A stretch of 64,000 bases of DNA from Auanema rhodensis (taxonomy: Eukaryota > Animalia > Nematoda): contig OZ059897.1 in assembly GCA_964057225.1 (NCBI GenBank), forward strand, positions 8,184,001 through 8,248,000. The letters are read 5' to 3'. Each line of letters starts with the position of its first letter. Position 1 is the first letter of the stretch. The notes beneath the pieces are model-generated. The model had not been told where the DNA came from. It did no database searches and saw nothing but the letters and a program-made list of their open reading frames with translations. Positions 11,512 through 18,899 of this stretch are shown here, in pieces. The position numbers and the translations under genes were made by a program.

Positions 11512-13089
11512 TTAATGACCTTCATTCTTAGAGTCGTCATTGTGAGTACTATCCTCATCTTGTACATCACTGGGAGTCTGGAAAAGTGCCTGATAAGTTT
11601 AAAAAATATTTTGTGACTTACTTCTGATGCATTAGAAACGTCATGAGCATCTGATGCATCTTCCGTTGATGTATCAGGATCCACTACTCCCTTCTTTGGT
11701 AAAGATTCATCTTCATTATCCAATGCCTAGAAATGAACTATTCATGAACAGCACTCATAGTGACACACCTTGCGTTTTCGGCCACCGTTCTTTTCAGACT
11801 CAACAGCATAAGCATGCTTGAGAGAGTCAAAAAATTGTTCTACATTAATATCAGTTTTCTAAAAAATAAAACAAAAAATAAACAAAATAAACGAAAAAAC
11901 CAACAGAAAATCCGATAGTAATGAGGAAAATTTGCATATGAGGGGAATCTGGACCCATTCCACTAATTTTTATTCGTTTCTGGTCAACCCTTTCTAAGAT
12001 CATATCATTAATAATTTTGGTATTAATAACAACACGATGGTTTCCAGCAGTACGAGCAACTAAATCATAGAAATAAAAGACGAAATTCAAATGAATATTA
12101 CTAATTCTATAATGAACTTCTCCTTCTCCTCGTCTTTTATTCAACTTGATATGACTGAGACCCTTTTCAACCCATTTACTTTTCTCTTTATCGAAGATAT
12201 GTAGTTTGCAAGCAGTCTGAAATATACCTTTAAAATAATCATCAAAATAGTTGACAAACCTGATGAACAACTTCATCATCTTCTTCTCCAGTTGTAACTG
12301 TAACACTTGTACTCGCTTGTTGCCTTTCTTCATTCTTCAATTTTTCAGCAGCAGCTGCAGCTTCAGCTTCCTCACGGAATTTAATAGGATTCTAAAAAAT
12401 CTACTTGATTTACATTTAGAACAATGCAATACTTACGCTCTCAGATTTCTCCTCAGGCTTTGAAGCAACGTTTTTGAATTGTTCTTCTGCTTTTACTGGG
12501 GCACTGTCACAGTTCTCAGCTGTGCCTTCATTTTCCTATAACATTTTTAATAAAACTCTATTTTCACACATTTTAATTGCCACCGAACCAAAGCTTAAAA
12601 TTATGATATTGATTGGATCATTCAGTGAAAACGCACAGCCGGTTATGCAACCATTCAAAATGAATTGACGCGGTTTTCAAAGTGACGATACGGTGCACAT
12701 TCAAATTTTCTTTTCAGTTTGACTTCAAATGACAAAAACTCGTGAAAGGATACAAAATCTAATTGAATCTAACAAAAAAGAAACTTACCATAATGACACG
12801 AGAAGCTATATTAGAACCGAAAACAAAAGCTGGTTGATCTTTAGATTTTTCTTCTTTTTCCCTCTTCTCAGCAGCCATTTTTGCGAGAACATCACTGAGA
12901 TTCTTCTTTTCCAGAACCAAATGCTTAGAAGCAGATGATGAATCAAAATTTTTCTTAGCTTAAAATTTTTAACCATTTAAGAATCTTACGAAAAAGGGAG
13001 AACTTACTCTGTGACCACATCTCATCAGCCTTCTTGGCCAATACAGAAGCCCGGAACACAGGCTTTTTAGGTTGATCTGAGTCGCCCAT
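11512..13089 (-). CDS. ran-5: RanBP1-domain (RanBP3-like) protein
   Basis: TTTCAG directly before ATG 13089. FGSG/FVFGS FG-like motifs. RanBD segment CKLHIFDKEKSKWVEKGLSHIKLN...RIVARTAGNHRVVINTKI, then an acidic tail and stop at 11512-11514. As recalled, the C. elegans ortholog also neighbours gldc-1. Confidence 0.8.
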
Positions 13090-13357
13090 CTGAAACAATC
13101 ATTATAATGAAATGCATAAAAGCTTCATAGCAACAAGAGATATAATAATACCACCTATGAGGAGCTCAATCTATTCAAATTGGAAGCATAATGCATAAAA
13201 GTTGAATATAGTAATAAAAATTAGTAAAATCAATTGATTTTCTTATAATATACTAATGAGTAACAAATAAAAGATAAAAATGATCAGAAAAAAGAAACAA
13301 AGTATAATTTCCGACAAAGGAGAGTCACGAATAGATAATGAAAGAATTCAAAACTGC

Positions 13358-13384: not shown

Positions 13385-13628
13385 ACTCACTTTGTTCCCA
13401 CCGCCTTGAAGTATTCAGCTTTTTTAGTTTGGAAAGCTTGTAAAATTAAATGAAGCCACTTTCCATTTCAAAAGTTCTATTATTTTTTCAATATAAACTT
13501 AATTGATATCCATTTAACCCTGCATGTTCTTATTTAATTTTTTTTTCTTTATTAGATTGCTTTAACTCTTACTATTTACAGGTTATTGTTCCGTGTCGCA
13601 TGTTTTGTGAATTCTTAAAGTTTAAATT

Positions 13629-14173
13629 ATGCGAAAATTAGTTATCCCTAAATACTACGGTCGTCCTTCCATCGGTTTAGCACTATTTGGATGCACTAAC
13701 CGACCTTTTTACCATATTTGCGTTTTTCCTGATCGAGCATTAGGAAGAAGGTACGAAAGTAATATAATTGAGCAGGTATATTATATGAAAATTCAATAAT
13801 GAGACTTGTAACGTGTGACTTCAGATTGGAACTTTTGATCCACTACCAAATTTCAATAACGAAAAGCTAGTCGCCCTCAATTTTGGAAGAATTAAATATT
13901 GGATTGGTGAAAGAAACGCTCATATCTCTGTTCCTGTCCTAGAACTGCTTGGTAAGTAATTATTTTATTGTTATTTTGAGTTTAATTTCTTTAATTAAAT
14001 TTTAGGATTATCTGGACTATTCCCTATTCATCCTAAAACCTATATTAGAGCTCGTGATAACAGGGAAGCACTTCTTGCTGAAAATACCAAAGAAGCAAGT
14101 GAAGAAGAGGTTTGTATGATTCTCTTATTTTGAATTTCAATAGCATTTTCAGGTTCAAGCTTCTCAGCAATGA
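13629..14173 (+). CDS. mrps-16: Mitochondrial ribosomal protein S16 (bS16m)
   Basis: [43 protein letters not shown]...[12 protein letters not shown]...[38 protein letters not shown]. Stop is TGA 14171-14173 if the 43-nt intron 14110-14152 is removed, or TGA 14131-14133 if it is retained. Confidence 0.95.
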
Positions 14174-16657
14174 TCTCCTCTCAAAATAGTAAACTCTTGT
14201 TTTCAAACTTAGTCTTTTTATTTGTTATATGTTGTACGTTAGAAGATACTTGTTTTCAAAACGTTAAAATTTATCACAATTCCAATAATAGCAATTTCTA
14301 TGATATCATAGGAAGTTCTTCAGAATGTTCTAGATTAGTTCAGTCCAGAAGTATGTTTATTTCTCATTTACGTATTAATCTCGATTACTTCTAGGTTCCT
14401 CTGAGCCAAAGCCATGTGACCCCAGTATATTAACCATGAGCATATCCCCAAATTCTTCATTTTATCAGGGAAATGTGTATGTTTTTTAGTTCATATTTTA
14501 CTTTTTAAATTTTGCGCTTTAGTATTCCCGATGTCAGGTTAAACTTTTCTGTTTTGATTTTTGAACATGTTGAAACGGTAGATTTTCGTCTTCAATGCTT
14601 ATATGCTCCTAATCACGAAGATACCTATTGTCATGACTCCACCAAGTAAGTAAAAATAATTTTTTCTTTTCATCAATTTTTTTTTAAAGAATGATTGTTA
14701 ACAATACTTGGCTTTGGCCTTGTAGAATGTTACAATTTCGTGGTAAAGAGGAAGAAGTTCGTCTTCCATTTTCATTTGGTTATAGCTGTTTCCGTATTTA
14801 TGGTCAATCCCATTATATGGTTAATGTAACACTACAACCTCAGAACTGCCGGTATTTTCTTATATTATTTATTTTGTTTTAACAATTTCGGATTATACAG
14901 ATCGTCGCTAATTTTTACGGCCCCAGATGACATTAACCTCTTCCCAGACATTGCTGATTTCTACAAAGTGCCGTTTGTATGGTCGCCTATGTTGATTGTT
15001 GATACATCCGAAGACGATGGCATTTGGTTTAGAATTGAAAAACCAAAAACAATTTATCGTATGCTCTAAGTTTCAATTTTTGAGTAACTTATTCTTTCTT
15101 CAGCTTATAATGTAAAAATTGATTTGTTCAAGTATTTACGAATCAAAGATAAACCTGGTCTTCAACTTCATGATAGCTTCATGATATCAACTCCTTCCCT
15201 CGGTTATAAGGTAAATTAGCTTTTTTAAACACAATATAGTCATTATTTTAGATAAGAAACACTGTAAAAGGTGACTATGTTGCTTATGCTTATGTCCCAA
15301 AATACGATTGCCGTCTTGTTTGTCCATCTTCTGATTTGCCATCTGATGTGGAGTGCCGTATATGCCAGCATACGAAGCTAAATTTTACAATTGACACTTC
15401 TAAAGGAGATTTCTTCTGGAAAAGTCTAGTAGCTGTTGAGGATTCCTGGGTTGTTATAGTTATATTCTTGTTAGGTATGCTCAAATTGATTTTTTTCATA
15501 AATGTAGTTTTCTTTGTAGGTGTATTCACCGTTTGTTTCTTGGGTATCGCCTCATTTCTCTGTTTTCTTCGCAAAAAACCAAATAGAAGTGTGTATGTAG
15601 AGCTTGTTGAACGACCTACAGTATGTATTTTTGTATTTTCTTTGAAATTATCTAATATTATCTAGGTTTTGGTGTTATATTCTGATGACACAACGGAGCA
15701 TTCTCATGCTGTTGCTAAATTTGCTGATTTACTAGCTTCATCAGCTAATGCTTCTGTTCGTATCGATATTAATGAGCTTATTTCAACAGGTTTTTTAAAA
15801 TTTATAGTGTTTTTTCTTATTTTGAACGTTTGTAGGCTCGTTGCCGTCTCGATGGCTTATCGAGTCTATGGGAAAAGCGTCTAGTGTCTTACTTGTATTA
15901 TCTCAAGCATCAGAAGGAATTTTGAATGGTCGTAAATTAGTTCAAAGAAGACCGTTTCCTGATATGTTTTCTATTGCTTGTGATTTGGTTATTCAGGTAG
16001 AAAAAGTTTTTCCAATTCCTAATCATTATCATTGTTTCCTTTAGGATTGTACAACTCATCCATCAAGCAAATCCAAGTTTGCCACTGTTCGTTTTCCATA
16101 TTCTCCTCAATCTGTTCCATATCATCTTGAAATGTTGGGTCTTCAGAATTTTGATGGTATCATTTCTGTATCAAAGATATATTTCAAGGAGTTTTTTGTT
16201 TCAGTTCCGAAGGATCTTGCTCTTCTTACAGCCTTTTTACATAGACTGAGTCACTCAAATGTTGAGCAAGATATGAGCAATTCATCTTCACTTCAAACGT
16301 TTATGGAATCTTTGACAGCTGCACAAGATTATATGAAAAATAACCCAGATTTTTTCGAAAATATGTGGCAGTTTGTGAGTTGATAGTATCCAACTTTTTC
16401 TATTTTAACTTTTACTTTCAGGAAACTACTACTGAGACACTAGATATCAAAGATTTACCTCCTAAGAATGATCTAACTGTTCAGGAGATTAATCCTGACA
16501 CTGAGGGACTGTTATTACCTGATGATGAATCGGTATGTTTTAATAGTTTCACAATCTGTGATTAATGTTTTTCTTTCAGAATGATGAGGGGTCGTACAAT
16601 AGCCAGGGCTCGTACAACATCCTACCACCTGGTTCTGATGACTCTGACATAGATTAG
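14170..16657 (+). CDS. ilcr-2: IL-17 receptor-like type I membrane protein with a cytoplasmic SEFIR domain
   Basis: Signal peptide from ATG 14170 and in-frame splicing through a Cys-containing ectodomain. TM segment WVVIVIFLLG..VFTVCFLGIASFLCFL, then SEFIR-like VLVLYSDDTTEHSHAVAKFADLL...RIDINEL...PSRWLIESMGKASSVLLVLS...RRPFPDMF. Stop TAG 16655-16657. Position between mrps-16 and a zinc-finger gene matches the recalled C. elegans F56D1 order. Confidence 0.82.
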
Positions 16658-16781
16658 TTTTTGCTATTATTAAATGTGATAAATAATTTCTTAATTAATG
16701 TCCTTTATTTATTTTTTTCGGTTAAAACCGACTTTATATTTGATTGTTTTTTCTATTATTTCTAAAATATCAGCATTGTAG

Positions 16782-18899
16782 ATGGAAGCAACTAATACTG
16801 AAGAAGAAGGAGAAGAACCTAAGTTACTCAAATTCCATGATCATTCTTATTGTTCCTCAGAAGGAACATCATTTTCCACTCAATGTGATGGCCTTGTTAT
16901 AGAGGGTCTAGCTGAGTTTTCTGATTTGGAAAATGATTTACCTTTATCCGTTGATATTGATAAGGATTCGGTAGCAAACACAGGAACATGTGAAACGACG
17001 ACAGCAGAATCTAATGACATTGCGGGGGAACCGCATTGTTCTGGCAGTTCTTCTGAGAGTGAAATAGAAGATGAAGTAATAATATCCTCTAGTTCAGGAG
17101 TAGAATCAGGTACCTATAAAAAGTTTTTTCATACCGTTCACGTTTTTTAGATGATGACGATGATGATGATGACGACGATGACGATGATGAATTTTTGGAC
17201 AATATCTCAATCAAATCGAAAAGAGGAAAAAGGTTGCCTCAGAGAGGGTCAAAAGAATATAAAGAAAAACGAAATAGTGAAAATAAAGCAAGGCGATTAG
17301 CTGCTTACGGCAAGCATGTGTAAGAGTTCTCATAATTTGTTGATTTGTATCATTTATTAATTTCAGATGTTCTGTTTGTGGGTATAAAGCATCTTATCCT
17401 AATAAGTTGCGACAACATGCTCAAATCCACAAAAAAGGTATTTCAATATATTTCTTTTTGATGTTTCATTCACGAGTTCAGATCGTTTCTGTTGTACATA
17501 TTGTAATATTTTTTTTAATGAACATCACGAACTACGAAAACATGTAGGGGAAAAACATCCGAAAATTCATCACTGTTCTATGTGTGATTATTCTAATACG
17601 GTAATTCAATTTTCTTTAAAACTTAAATTCAAAAATGCTTTCAGAAACTTTTTTTTGTCAACCGACATTATCAAAGTCAGCATGTTCATGGAATTCCCTG
17701 TCCCATAGCAGGGTGTAAAGCTATTTTTTCCAAAAATTTTCTGAAGTTTGCCAAATTTTGCTAAACAAATTTATACTATTTATTTCAGATCTCATATTAA
17801 ATCAGCTCATAGTGAAACTCTGCCTGAAGAAAGAGTTTCTCTGAGAGCCAAGGTTGATGTGGATGTTAAATGTGATCAATGCAGTTTTTTGGCAAAAAGT
17901 CGGTTAGAAATGGATAAGCACGTGGAACGGTATTACAACTATTTATTCAACAAACTTATAAATTTCATTGTGTTGTTTTAAGAATCCATGTAGGAATAGC
18001 ATGTCCGATTCTAGGATGCTCAGCTTTAGTTAAAGCTCCTGATTTCGAAGCTCATATTGTACTTGCTCATCCAGAAAATGAAGTTTCAGATGATCTTAAT
18101 ATTACACCAGCGGAATTTTTCGGTTTGCTATATGCATGATGTTCCCGATTTATGATACCCATTTAGATCGTTCCGCTAATGGAAGTGAAGTTATGACGGA
18201 AGAAACCTCCCTCACTGGCTTGGATGATGGGTTTTCCACAGCTGGCACAATAGAGCATGATCCTACTTCTGAAATAAACGATCTAATTGAGCGTCATCAT
18301 GATGATTATGATGATGATGAAGATTATGGAGATGATGGTTCATTATCCAACGGTGACGGCGGTGTAACACGTATGGGTATTAGAAATTTTTATGGTATGG
18401 AAACGCTTTGAAATTAATTTAAAAAATATTTTTCATTTTCCAGGCGAATTTTTATGTGAATGTGGTAAAGGTTTTAAAACAAGATATTTATTAAACAAAC
18501 ATTACAAATCAGTAAGATCTGCATTTTATTTCATACAAATATTAAAATTAATTTTAGGTACATGCAAAAGTATATAAAATTGCTAAAAGAGTTTCGACTC
18601 ATAAGTGCACGTTTCCAAATTGTACAAAATTGTTTAGAACTGAAGCACTTTTAGAAGATCATTTAAATATGCACAATAGTAAGGACACTTTACAGTATTA
18701 GTTAGATCATGATCAAACTTTGTTTTCAGACGTAACTCCATTCAAATGTGTTAGTTGCAATTTATCATTTTTCGCTAGAGCACGACTTGCTGTTCATTTG
18801 AGGAAATACCATAAAATAAGTATCAAGAGTTATACAGAAATACAAAGAGATCTACCTCAAATGCGCTCTGAAGAAGTTGAAGAAGTTACTCTTAGTTAG
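16782..18899 (+). CDS. Multi-C2H2 zinc-finger protein with acidic N-terminus
   Basis: TTGTAG acceptor directly before ATG. Poly-Asp tract at ~17150-17190. Fingers include CSVCGY..HAQIH, CTYC..HVGEKH, CDQCSF..HVERIH, CPILGC, CECGKGF..HYKSVH, CTFPNC..HLNMH and CVSC..HLRKYH. Stop TAG 18897-18899. Confidence 0.9.

Follow-up and report, generated by a model that had tools for sequence, protein, structure and literature searches.

A conserved mrps-16/IL-17 receptor gene pair in nematodes, possibly expressed from one SL1-capped dicistronic mRNA read by scanning ribosomes

We analyzed a window of 64,000 nucleotides (nt) from the nematode Auanema rhodensis (contig OZ059897.1, positions 8,184,001 to 8,248,000 of the forward strand, GenBank assembly GCA_964057225.1), in which mrps-16, the gene for the mitoribosomal protein bS16m, is followed by a gene for an IL-17-receptor-like protein with a SEFIR domain. 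The stop codon of mrps-16 sits inside the first coding exon of the receptor gene. We favor the reading, to which we give a probability of about 0.5, that the two genes are expressed from a conserved dicistronic mRNA capped by spliced leader 1 (SL1), on which the receptor open reading frame (ORF) is reached by scanning ribosomes. The general view is that spliced leader (SL) trans-splicing cuts nematode polycistronic transcripts into monocistronic mRNAs; a conserved pair of ORFs that meet in one cis-spliced exon, the first of them free of AUGs, would clearly exemplify a mature dicistronic mRNA in a nematode.

The features of the first gene and of the junction, in window coordinates, are these:

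13570..13581, + strand: SL1 trans-splice acceptor tactatttacag, with the mature mRNA running from 13582 (loose end CCAAGTTTG before 13580 in four runs)
13600..13641, + strand: upstream ORF (uORF) of 13 codons in the +1 frame, with C at -3, overlapping the mrps-16 start and ending with TAG at 13639-41 (sequence)
13629..13775, + strand: mrps-16 exon 1, with the ATG at 13629 (Pfam Ribosomal_S16 match, RNA contigs)
13691..13699, + strand: the only ATG between the mrps-16 and receptor starts, out of frame, opening a two-codon mini-ORF, ATG CAC TAA (sequence)
13825..13951, + strand: mrps-16 exon 2 (Ribosomal_S16 match, RNA contigs)
14006..14109, + strand: mrps-16 exon 3 (RNA contigs)
14110..14152, + strand: last mrps-16 intron, 43 nt, GT..AG, spliced out in RNA (joint 14107>14151, cut +2)
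14153..14350, + strand: shared exon, with the last six codons and stop of mrps-16 (14153-14173) and the first coding exon of the receptor (14170-14350) (sequence and RNA contigs)
14170..14173, + strand: ATGA, the receptor start overlapping the mrps-16 stop (sequence)
14188..14193, + strand: AGTAAA, candidate weak poly(A) signal for a short mrps-16-only mRNA (sequence only)

The last mrps-16 exon comprises 21 nt (GTT CAA GCT TCT CAG CAA TGA, encoding VQASQQ and a stop), and with its TGA at 14171-14173 and the receptor ATG at 14170-14172 the stop and the start overlap by 4 nt. The intron before it has the donor GAG|gtttgt at 14109/14110 and the acceptor ttttcag| ending at 14152. If that intron were retained, the mrps-16 stop would fall at 14131-14133, 19 nt ahead of the acceptor; this intron-retained form (stop 14133) was not seen in the RNA contigs, which drop rare forms. 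An earlier note on this DNA, made without database searches, had described the donor, acceptor, last exon, ATGA, 14133 stop and AGTAAA, and all of its coordinates and sequence statements are correct.

For the window species, the RNA consisted of assembled contigs from four runs of one study, recorded as "RNA?". Because introns are absent from these contigs and a spliced leader is attached, we conclude that the four runs are cDNA. Each run yielded one contig of ~2.4 kb that begins with the SL1 tail, crosses 13775|13825, 13951|14006 and 14109|14153 and continues to ~16690, and the same contigs cross the listed receptor junctions, twelve in number. Their loose end CCAAGTTTG together with the genomic "ag" at 13580-81 gives the 3' end of SL1, and canonical SL1 genes are present in the A. 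rhodensis genome. Since the contigs carry both the SL1 tail and the junction 14109|14153, the mrps-16 mRNA is SL1-spliced at 13582 and its last intron is cis-spliced. That cis junction, which the earlier note had named as a thing to look for, also settles the position of the mrps-16 stop within the first coding exon of the receptor. The next gene downstream, a zinc-finger gene, is represented by a separate contig of lower depth beginning at 16780; the contigs thus break there, while mrps-16 and the receptor stay joined.

Intron-free contigs from three other nematode data sets (L004, L005 and L006) also bear both ORFs, and that of L004 has an SL1 tail and retains its 73-nt spacer. The contigs are therefore continuous over both ORFs in four data sets, yet contigs can merge overlapping transcripts. 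Upstream of mrps-16, the L006 contig has 1.7 kb (positions 1-1767) without a long ORF, which could be a long 5' untranslated region (5'UTR), an unprocessed outron or the UTR of an upstream operon member; such contigs can include unprocessed RNA. A very large array of canonical SL1 genes in tandem lies at G000:C3:6741531-6770267 and beyond (loci L011 and L012), where exact copies of the 22-nt SL1 plus GT occur 1178 times in forward and 80 times in reverse orientation, at a spacing of ~252 bp.

Ten loci were collected from searches with mrps-16 exon 1 and a full-length ortholog. The receptor stands directly behind mrps-16 in nine species or contigs, i.e., the window species and eight others, and because the adjacency recurs in all nine, the arrangement is more than chance; on the evidence of gene order, the pairing is old. 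From the mrps-16 stop to the receptor ATG, the gaps range from -4 to +119 nt:

A. rhodensis window: -4 nt
Pristionchus fissidentatus: 0 nt, TAG followed directly by ATG, with the last intron inferred
Intron-free contigs L005 and L006: +2 nt each
Heligmosomoides polygyrus: +17 nt
Mesorhabditis spiculigera: +52 nt
RNA contig L004: +73 nt
Strongyloides ratti: +89 nt
Caenorhabditis nigoni: +119 nt

A single exon holds both the mrps-16 stop and the receptor ATG in four genomes (the window, Pristionchus, H. polygyrus and C. nigoni), and these four have an intron at the corresponding place, between the conserved core and a short C-terminal tail. The 52-nt spacer of Mesorhabditis is without any AG, so that no trans-splice acceptor is possible there, and Mesorhabditis has no last mrps-16 intron either. 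The comparison of spacing among orthologs that the earlier note had proposed thus shows a recurring adjacency, while the ATGA overlap itself is not conserved. The putative last intron of Pristionchus (261 nt) has an AATAAA ~140 nt before its acceptor, and the Pristionchus lineage may use an 'alternative operon' mode, as discussed below. The spotting of poly(A)-signal hexamers in spacers proved too permissive and was left out as evidence.

Two species with other gene orders served as controls: Halicephalobus sp. (L010), with the order mrps-16, zinc finger, SEFIR, and Steinernema carpocapsae (L008), with the order SEFIR, mrps-16, zinc finger, in which the mrps-16 3'UTR has an ordinary AATAAA. 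The mrps-16, SEFIR receptor and C2H2 zinc-finger genes remain clustered in both, in a changed order.

Where the receptor lies directly behind it, the mrps-16 ORF is nearly free of ATGs. The nine such ORFs have 3 out-of-frame ATGs against 19.9 expected (P<1e-4) under a null that keeps the protein sequence and codon set fixed and permutes synonymous codons; none of the 10000 permutations was as low as the observed 3. The same nine ORFs have one internal Met in 3837 nt, and their density is 0.10 ATG per 100 nt, as against ~2.6 in the receptor ORFs. Receptor ORFs of the same RNAs served to calibrate the null, and because they match expectation (31 observed vs 29 expected, 39 vs 31 and 37 vs 34), the permutation null is unbiased. 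Codon-order shuffles and dinucleotide shuffles gave an effect in the same direction, the synonymous permutation being the stricter null. Single-species tests are weak (P 0.01 to 0.5), and the result is strong only when the species are pooled.

In the window, mrps-16 has one ATG in 392 nt where ~10 would be predicted from the receptor's ATG density, and the mature mRNA holds three ATGs only (13600, 13629 and 13691) from SL1 to the receptor ATG. The mrps-16 of Halicephalobus has five internal ATGs, including three Met, a normal density. Pooled, the controls give 3 against 5.2 expected and 0.68 ATG per 100 nt; the difference in density between linked and control genes has a binomial P of ~0.004, with only two controls. 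The depletion of AUGs in the first cistron and spacer is what a dicistron translated by scanning should show: an ORF free of ATGs in all frames is the expected product of selection where scanning subunits must cross it.

A second shared feature is the uORF, present in six of the nine species or contigs (the window, C. nigoni, Mesorhabditis, Pristionchus, L004 and L005), in which it ends between -6 and +16 nt relative to the mrps-16 ATG. In the window, C. nigoni and Mesorhabditis it occupies the +1 frame and shares its terminal TAG, at +10 to +12; the Pristionchus uORF also overlaps the mrps-16 start, and those of L004 and L005 end 5-6 nt ahead of it. At position -3, all six upstream ATGs carry a pyrimidine, whereas the mrps-16 ATG carries a purine in each of the six contexts listed and A in H. 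polygyrus. After the predicted acceptor, no uORF was found in either control (Halicephalobus and Steinernema).

On the reading we favor, mrps-16 and the receptor would form one conserved transcription unit in which the last mrps-16 exon doubles as the first coding exon of the receptor. The RNA contigs show that the primary transcript is SL1-trans-spliced at 13582 and that all introns, including 14110-14152, are removed in cis; judging from those contigs, the RNA that runs to the receptor poly(A) site would be the mature dicistronic mRNA. Most ribosomes would start at the mrps-16 ATG, while a minority would bypass it, either via the uORF and resumed scanning or by leaky scanning, and the bypassing 40S subunits would cross the nearly ATG-free ORF to the receptor ATG. 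Because the mrps-16 start context is not weak, the bypass would in our view run mainly through the uORF. On this hypothesis, ribosomes that initiate at the weak upstream ATG would terminate on or beside the mrps-16 ATG, be unable to use it, rescan and reinitiate further on; in the window, they would meet the mini-ORF at 13691 first and then the receptor ATG. The 4-nt overlap, which is not conserved, could add a yield from termination and reinitiation in A. rhodensis. More speculatively, the AGTAAA within the signal-peptide codons of the receptor could give rise to a short mRNA with mrps-16 alone and thereby determine in what proportion the two products are made.

We would like to note several points that weigh against scanning on a dicistronic mRNA. 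The control species number two, and one of them, Steinernema, is itself ATG-poor, with one ATG in mrps-16 (1 observed vs 2.7 expected). De Bruijn contigs fuse any transcripts that overlap by at least 31 nt, and they lose SL and poly(A) ends to clipping; with two overlapping ORFs, one and the same contig would result from a short mrps-16 mRNA plus an SL-spliced receptor mRNA. Unlike typical leaky-scanning bicistrons, mrps-16 does not have a weak start context. As for the uORF, it is not established for L006 and S. ratti, and the mature mRNA of H. polygyrus probably lacks it, since the predicted acceptor lies only 4 nt before the ATG. Finally, there are acceptor-like sites in the spacers of C. 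nigoni, L004 and S. ratti, where ordinary trans-splicing may take place, and mixed modes are possible.

The best of the rival explanations, which we consider possible but unlikely, is a choice of splicing at the 14152 acceptor. Used in cis, it would give an mrps-16 mRNA polyadenylated within the receptor exon, and used in trans, with SL1 or SL2, a receptor mRNA with a 17-nt 5'UTR, each pre-mRNA thus yielding one product. This was the choice put forward in the earlier note, and its cis half has been observed; for its trans half, no SL loose end at 14153 was reported in the window contigs, which cannot show absence, and SL-joined molecules could accordingly go unseen in them. In C. elegans SL1-type operons, 3'-end formation and trans-splicing compete at one site (Williams et al. 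1999, as related in PMC9258526). The window offers a good TTTTCAG acceptor 17 nt before the receptor ATG, and, 15 nt past the mrps-16 stop, an AGTAAA with a U-rich stretch behind it; in H. polygyrus, Pristionchus and C. nigoni, too, the receptor ATG is closely preceded by an acceptor. Against this, an acceptor with its own donor upstream is, by the outron rule, a context for cis-splicing in nematodes, and the 14152 acceptor has such a donor 43 nt away; the cis product is the only one seen. Nor would a choice of splicing predict selection on the ATGs of mrps-16 or on the uORF, although the ATG desert and the uORF are both conserved and go with gene order, and Mesorhabditis offers neither an AG in the spacer nor a last intron at which such a choice could be made.

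Improbable, in our view, is a dicistronic mRNA on which ribosomes that terminate at the UGA restart at the overlapping AUG, as at viral AUGA/UAAUG junctions. The continuous RNA contigs fit it, as do the ATGA overlap of the window, the 0-nt gap of Pristionchus and the 2-nt gaps of L005 and L006. In five other species or contigs, however, the gap is 17-119 nt, so that the overlap is not the conserved feature, and over all nine the variation from -4 to +119 nt leaves no conserved stop-start overlap such as this mechanism would have. Ribosomes that have translated an ORF of ~130 codons, the length of mrps-16, normally reinitiate poorly unless a dedicated RNA element assists them; no search was made for such an element. 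A first ORF free of ATGs along its whole length is also not required by such a mechanism. Of the fallback offered in the earlier note, a dicistronic mRNA with stop-restart translation, the dicistron fits better than the splice choice, while the ATG desert and uORF point to scanning from the 5' end or reinitiation rather than to a restart at the ATGA.

That there are two ordinary mRNAs, with transcription of the receptor starting separately or its translation at a downstream codon, and with contigs that are assembly merges or pre-mRNA, is very improbable: contigs over two genes do not prove a single transcript, and the 1.7 kb of non-coding sequence upstream in L006 indicates that unprocessed RNA can enter contigs, but the overlapping stop and start leave no room for a promoter, the ATG at 14170 is the sole start that gives a signal peptide and aligns with the orthologous starts, and at the classical junction ahead of the zinc-finger gene the contigs are indeed interrupted.

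Returning to scanning on a dicistronic mRNA, a tentative and rather doubtful extension is that this mRNA is conserved in clade IV as well as clade V and that the uORF splits the ribosomes, those that skip the upstream ATG making bS16m and those that translate the uORF passing over the mrps-16 start and the ATG-free ORF and reinitiating at the receptor. If this is true, receptor output would track the translational state of the cell (e.g., ternary-complex availability or stress), and mitochondrial or translational status would be coupled to the neuro-immune signalling of IL-17, all in a phylum in which trans-splicing is assumed to resolve polycistrons. More generally, the arrangement suggests that expression of the IL-17 receptor, which acts in neuromodulation and immunity, is set translationally, jointly with that of a mitoribosomal protein.

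Among known systems, bicistronic mRNAs of Drosophila stoned and Snapin were reportedly described by Wall et al. in 2005. AUG-poor first cistrons are a recognized mark of leaky-scanning bicistronic mRNAs, in green algae as well as in Drosophila stoned and Snapin (PMC11892635). The nematode pair would resemble these fly and algal bicistrons in having two unrelated ORFs on one capped mRNA, and resembles them in its short, nearly AUG-free first ORF, in the small distance between the ORFs and in an arrangement retained over a long evolutionary distance. It differs from them in that its host lineage normally resolves polycistrons by SL trans-splicing, in that the mrps-16 start context is not weak and the uORF is the more conserved candidate for the bypass, and in that the two ORFs meet inside an exon made by splicing. 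Delayed reinitiation controlled by uORFs is known from GCN4 and ATF4. There, too, a short uORF ends at or over the main start, and the ribosomes that translate it skip that start and reinitiate downstream; in the nematode pair, the bypassed ORF is instead a full housekeeping gene and the distant target a second gene. By analogy, the mrps-16/receptor junction would work most like the fly and algal leaky-scanning bicistrons, with a GCN4/ATF4-like uORF twist, and would be new in nematodes.

The nematode operon types fit less well. In 'alternative operons', which Morton and Blumenthal are said to have described in 2011, 3'-end formation and SL2 trans-splicing take place inside a sizeable intron. 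As in these, one acceptor could either join upstream exons or begin a downstream mRNA; unlike theirs, the window intron is 43 nt long, has no poly(A) signal and is spliced out in RNA. The C. elegans SL1-type operons (mes-6/cks-1; Williams et al. 1999, as related in PMC9258526) likewise lack any sequence between the cistrons, and within a few shared nucleotides the 3' end of the upstream gene competes with the 5' end of the downstream one. In such operons, the upstream stop and poly(A) signal come before the trans-splice site, whereas the mrps-16 stop lies 21 nt past the acceptor. The junction is therefore not of the SL1 type, because the mrps-16 stop follows the acceptor and the acceptor is used in cis, and it is also not a classical SL2-type junction (poly(A) signal, ~100-nt spacer, SL2), because there is no spacer between the mrps-16 stop and the receptor start. 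In the literature searched, which did not include Allen et al. 2011, neither an ilcr-1 or mrps-16 operon nor the junction of the two is described. The C. briggsae TEC-RED paper gives other SL1-type operons, and the mrps-16/receptor pair is not among them.

Window proteins were searched exon by exon, and joined sequences were used solely for frame checks and ATG counts. The window, nematode DNA, has ~33% GC and introns of ~45 nt. Exons 1 and 2 of mrps-16 match Ribosomal_S16 (PF00886) with 18.9 and 25.1 bits, each below the whole-protein cut-off of 27 because the intron splits the domain; 50.6 bits are reached by the L004 ortholog, which has no intron. Four nematode proteins (bS16m/S16 or MRPS-16-like) share 86-98% identity with exon 1, and the PF00886 match and the orthology to annotated bS16m place the gene in that family.

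The receptor gene and the start of its downstream neighbor are laid out as follows:

14170..16657, + strand: IL-17-receptor-like (SEFIR) gene, 14 exons (first 12 introns from RNA joints, last intron read from sequence; frame open; SEFIR match)
Receptor exons 1-7, + strand: 14170-14350, 14395-14476, 14523-14645, 14690-14851, 14901-15058, 15104-15210, 15252-15474
Receptor exons 8-14, + strand: 15520-15620, 15666-15789, 15836-15996, 16045-16156, 16205-16374, 16422-16532, 16580-16657
16780..16784, + strand: acceptor 'ag' and then ATG (16782) of the next gene, a C2H2 zinc-finger gene, where a separate RNA contig begins (RNA contigs, sequence)

From the ATG at 14170, the receptor frame is open across all RNA-supported exons and encodes ~630 amino acids, ending with TAG at 16655-57; a signal peptide, a transmembrane segment and a SEFIR domain are predicted in the translation. 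The SEFIR score is 25.2 bits on the single exon 15666-15789 (cut-off 23), and the orthologs match both SEFIR and IL17R_fnIII_D1. Thus, the Pfam matches to Ribosomal_S16 and SEFIR bear out both gene identities that the earlier note had read from the sequence. The next in-frame ATG lies past the hydrophobic leader, so that 14170 is the only start with a signal peptide; because the N-termini of the orthologs align, with a signal peptide and then an invariant Cys, we take it to be the true receptor start, as had been proposed. The signal peptide, single transmembrane segment and cytoplasmic SEFIR domain, together with the synteny with mrps-16 and the zinc-finger gene, make this an IL-17 receptor-like protein, and it is probably the ortholog of ilcr-1. 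We take ilcr-1 to be the C. elegans gene F56D1.2. The C. elegans locus is depicted with clr-1 followed downstream by two genes, mrps-16 and F56D1.2 (PMC5482996), and for ilcr-1 both mutants and tagged lines are available (PMC7190641, PMC7847803). The pair is thus testable in C. elegans, where mrps-16 and F56D1.2 adjoin.

The junction between the receptor and zinc-finger genes has the layout of a classical SL2-type operon junction, with a gap of ~85-125 nt. Within 16655-16790, the stop at 16657 is followed by GATAAA and AATAAT near 16678-16686 and by the end of the RNA contig at ~16690. In the region of the zinc-finger gene, a run of Asp codons (GAT/GAC) at 17150-17195 reads as Ser-rich on the opposite strand. 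On the other side of mrps-16, a divergent minus-strand gene (12990-13095) starts at ~13090 (ttcag|ATG GGC GAC TCA...) and is covered by a separate RNA contig; presumably, the ~490 nt from its start to the mrps-16 SL1 site serve both genes as a bidirectional promoter. The neighbor on that side of mrps-16 is a minus-strand gene with DSPn/DSPc phosphatase domains in Mesorhabditis and clr-1 in C. elegans (PMC5482996).

Several public gene models in this region are fused or truncated because of this gene architecture. In Heterorhabditis (P0067), the MRPS-16 N-terminus is fused to the receptor signal peptide; in Mesorhabditis (L003 5691-10255), the receptor is fused with the zinc-finger gene; and the C. 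nigoni mrps-16 model (L002 5001-5057) begins ahead of the probable trans-splice acceptor. Both C. nigoni and Steinernema have an EF-hand gene downstream on the minus strand.

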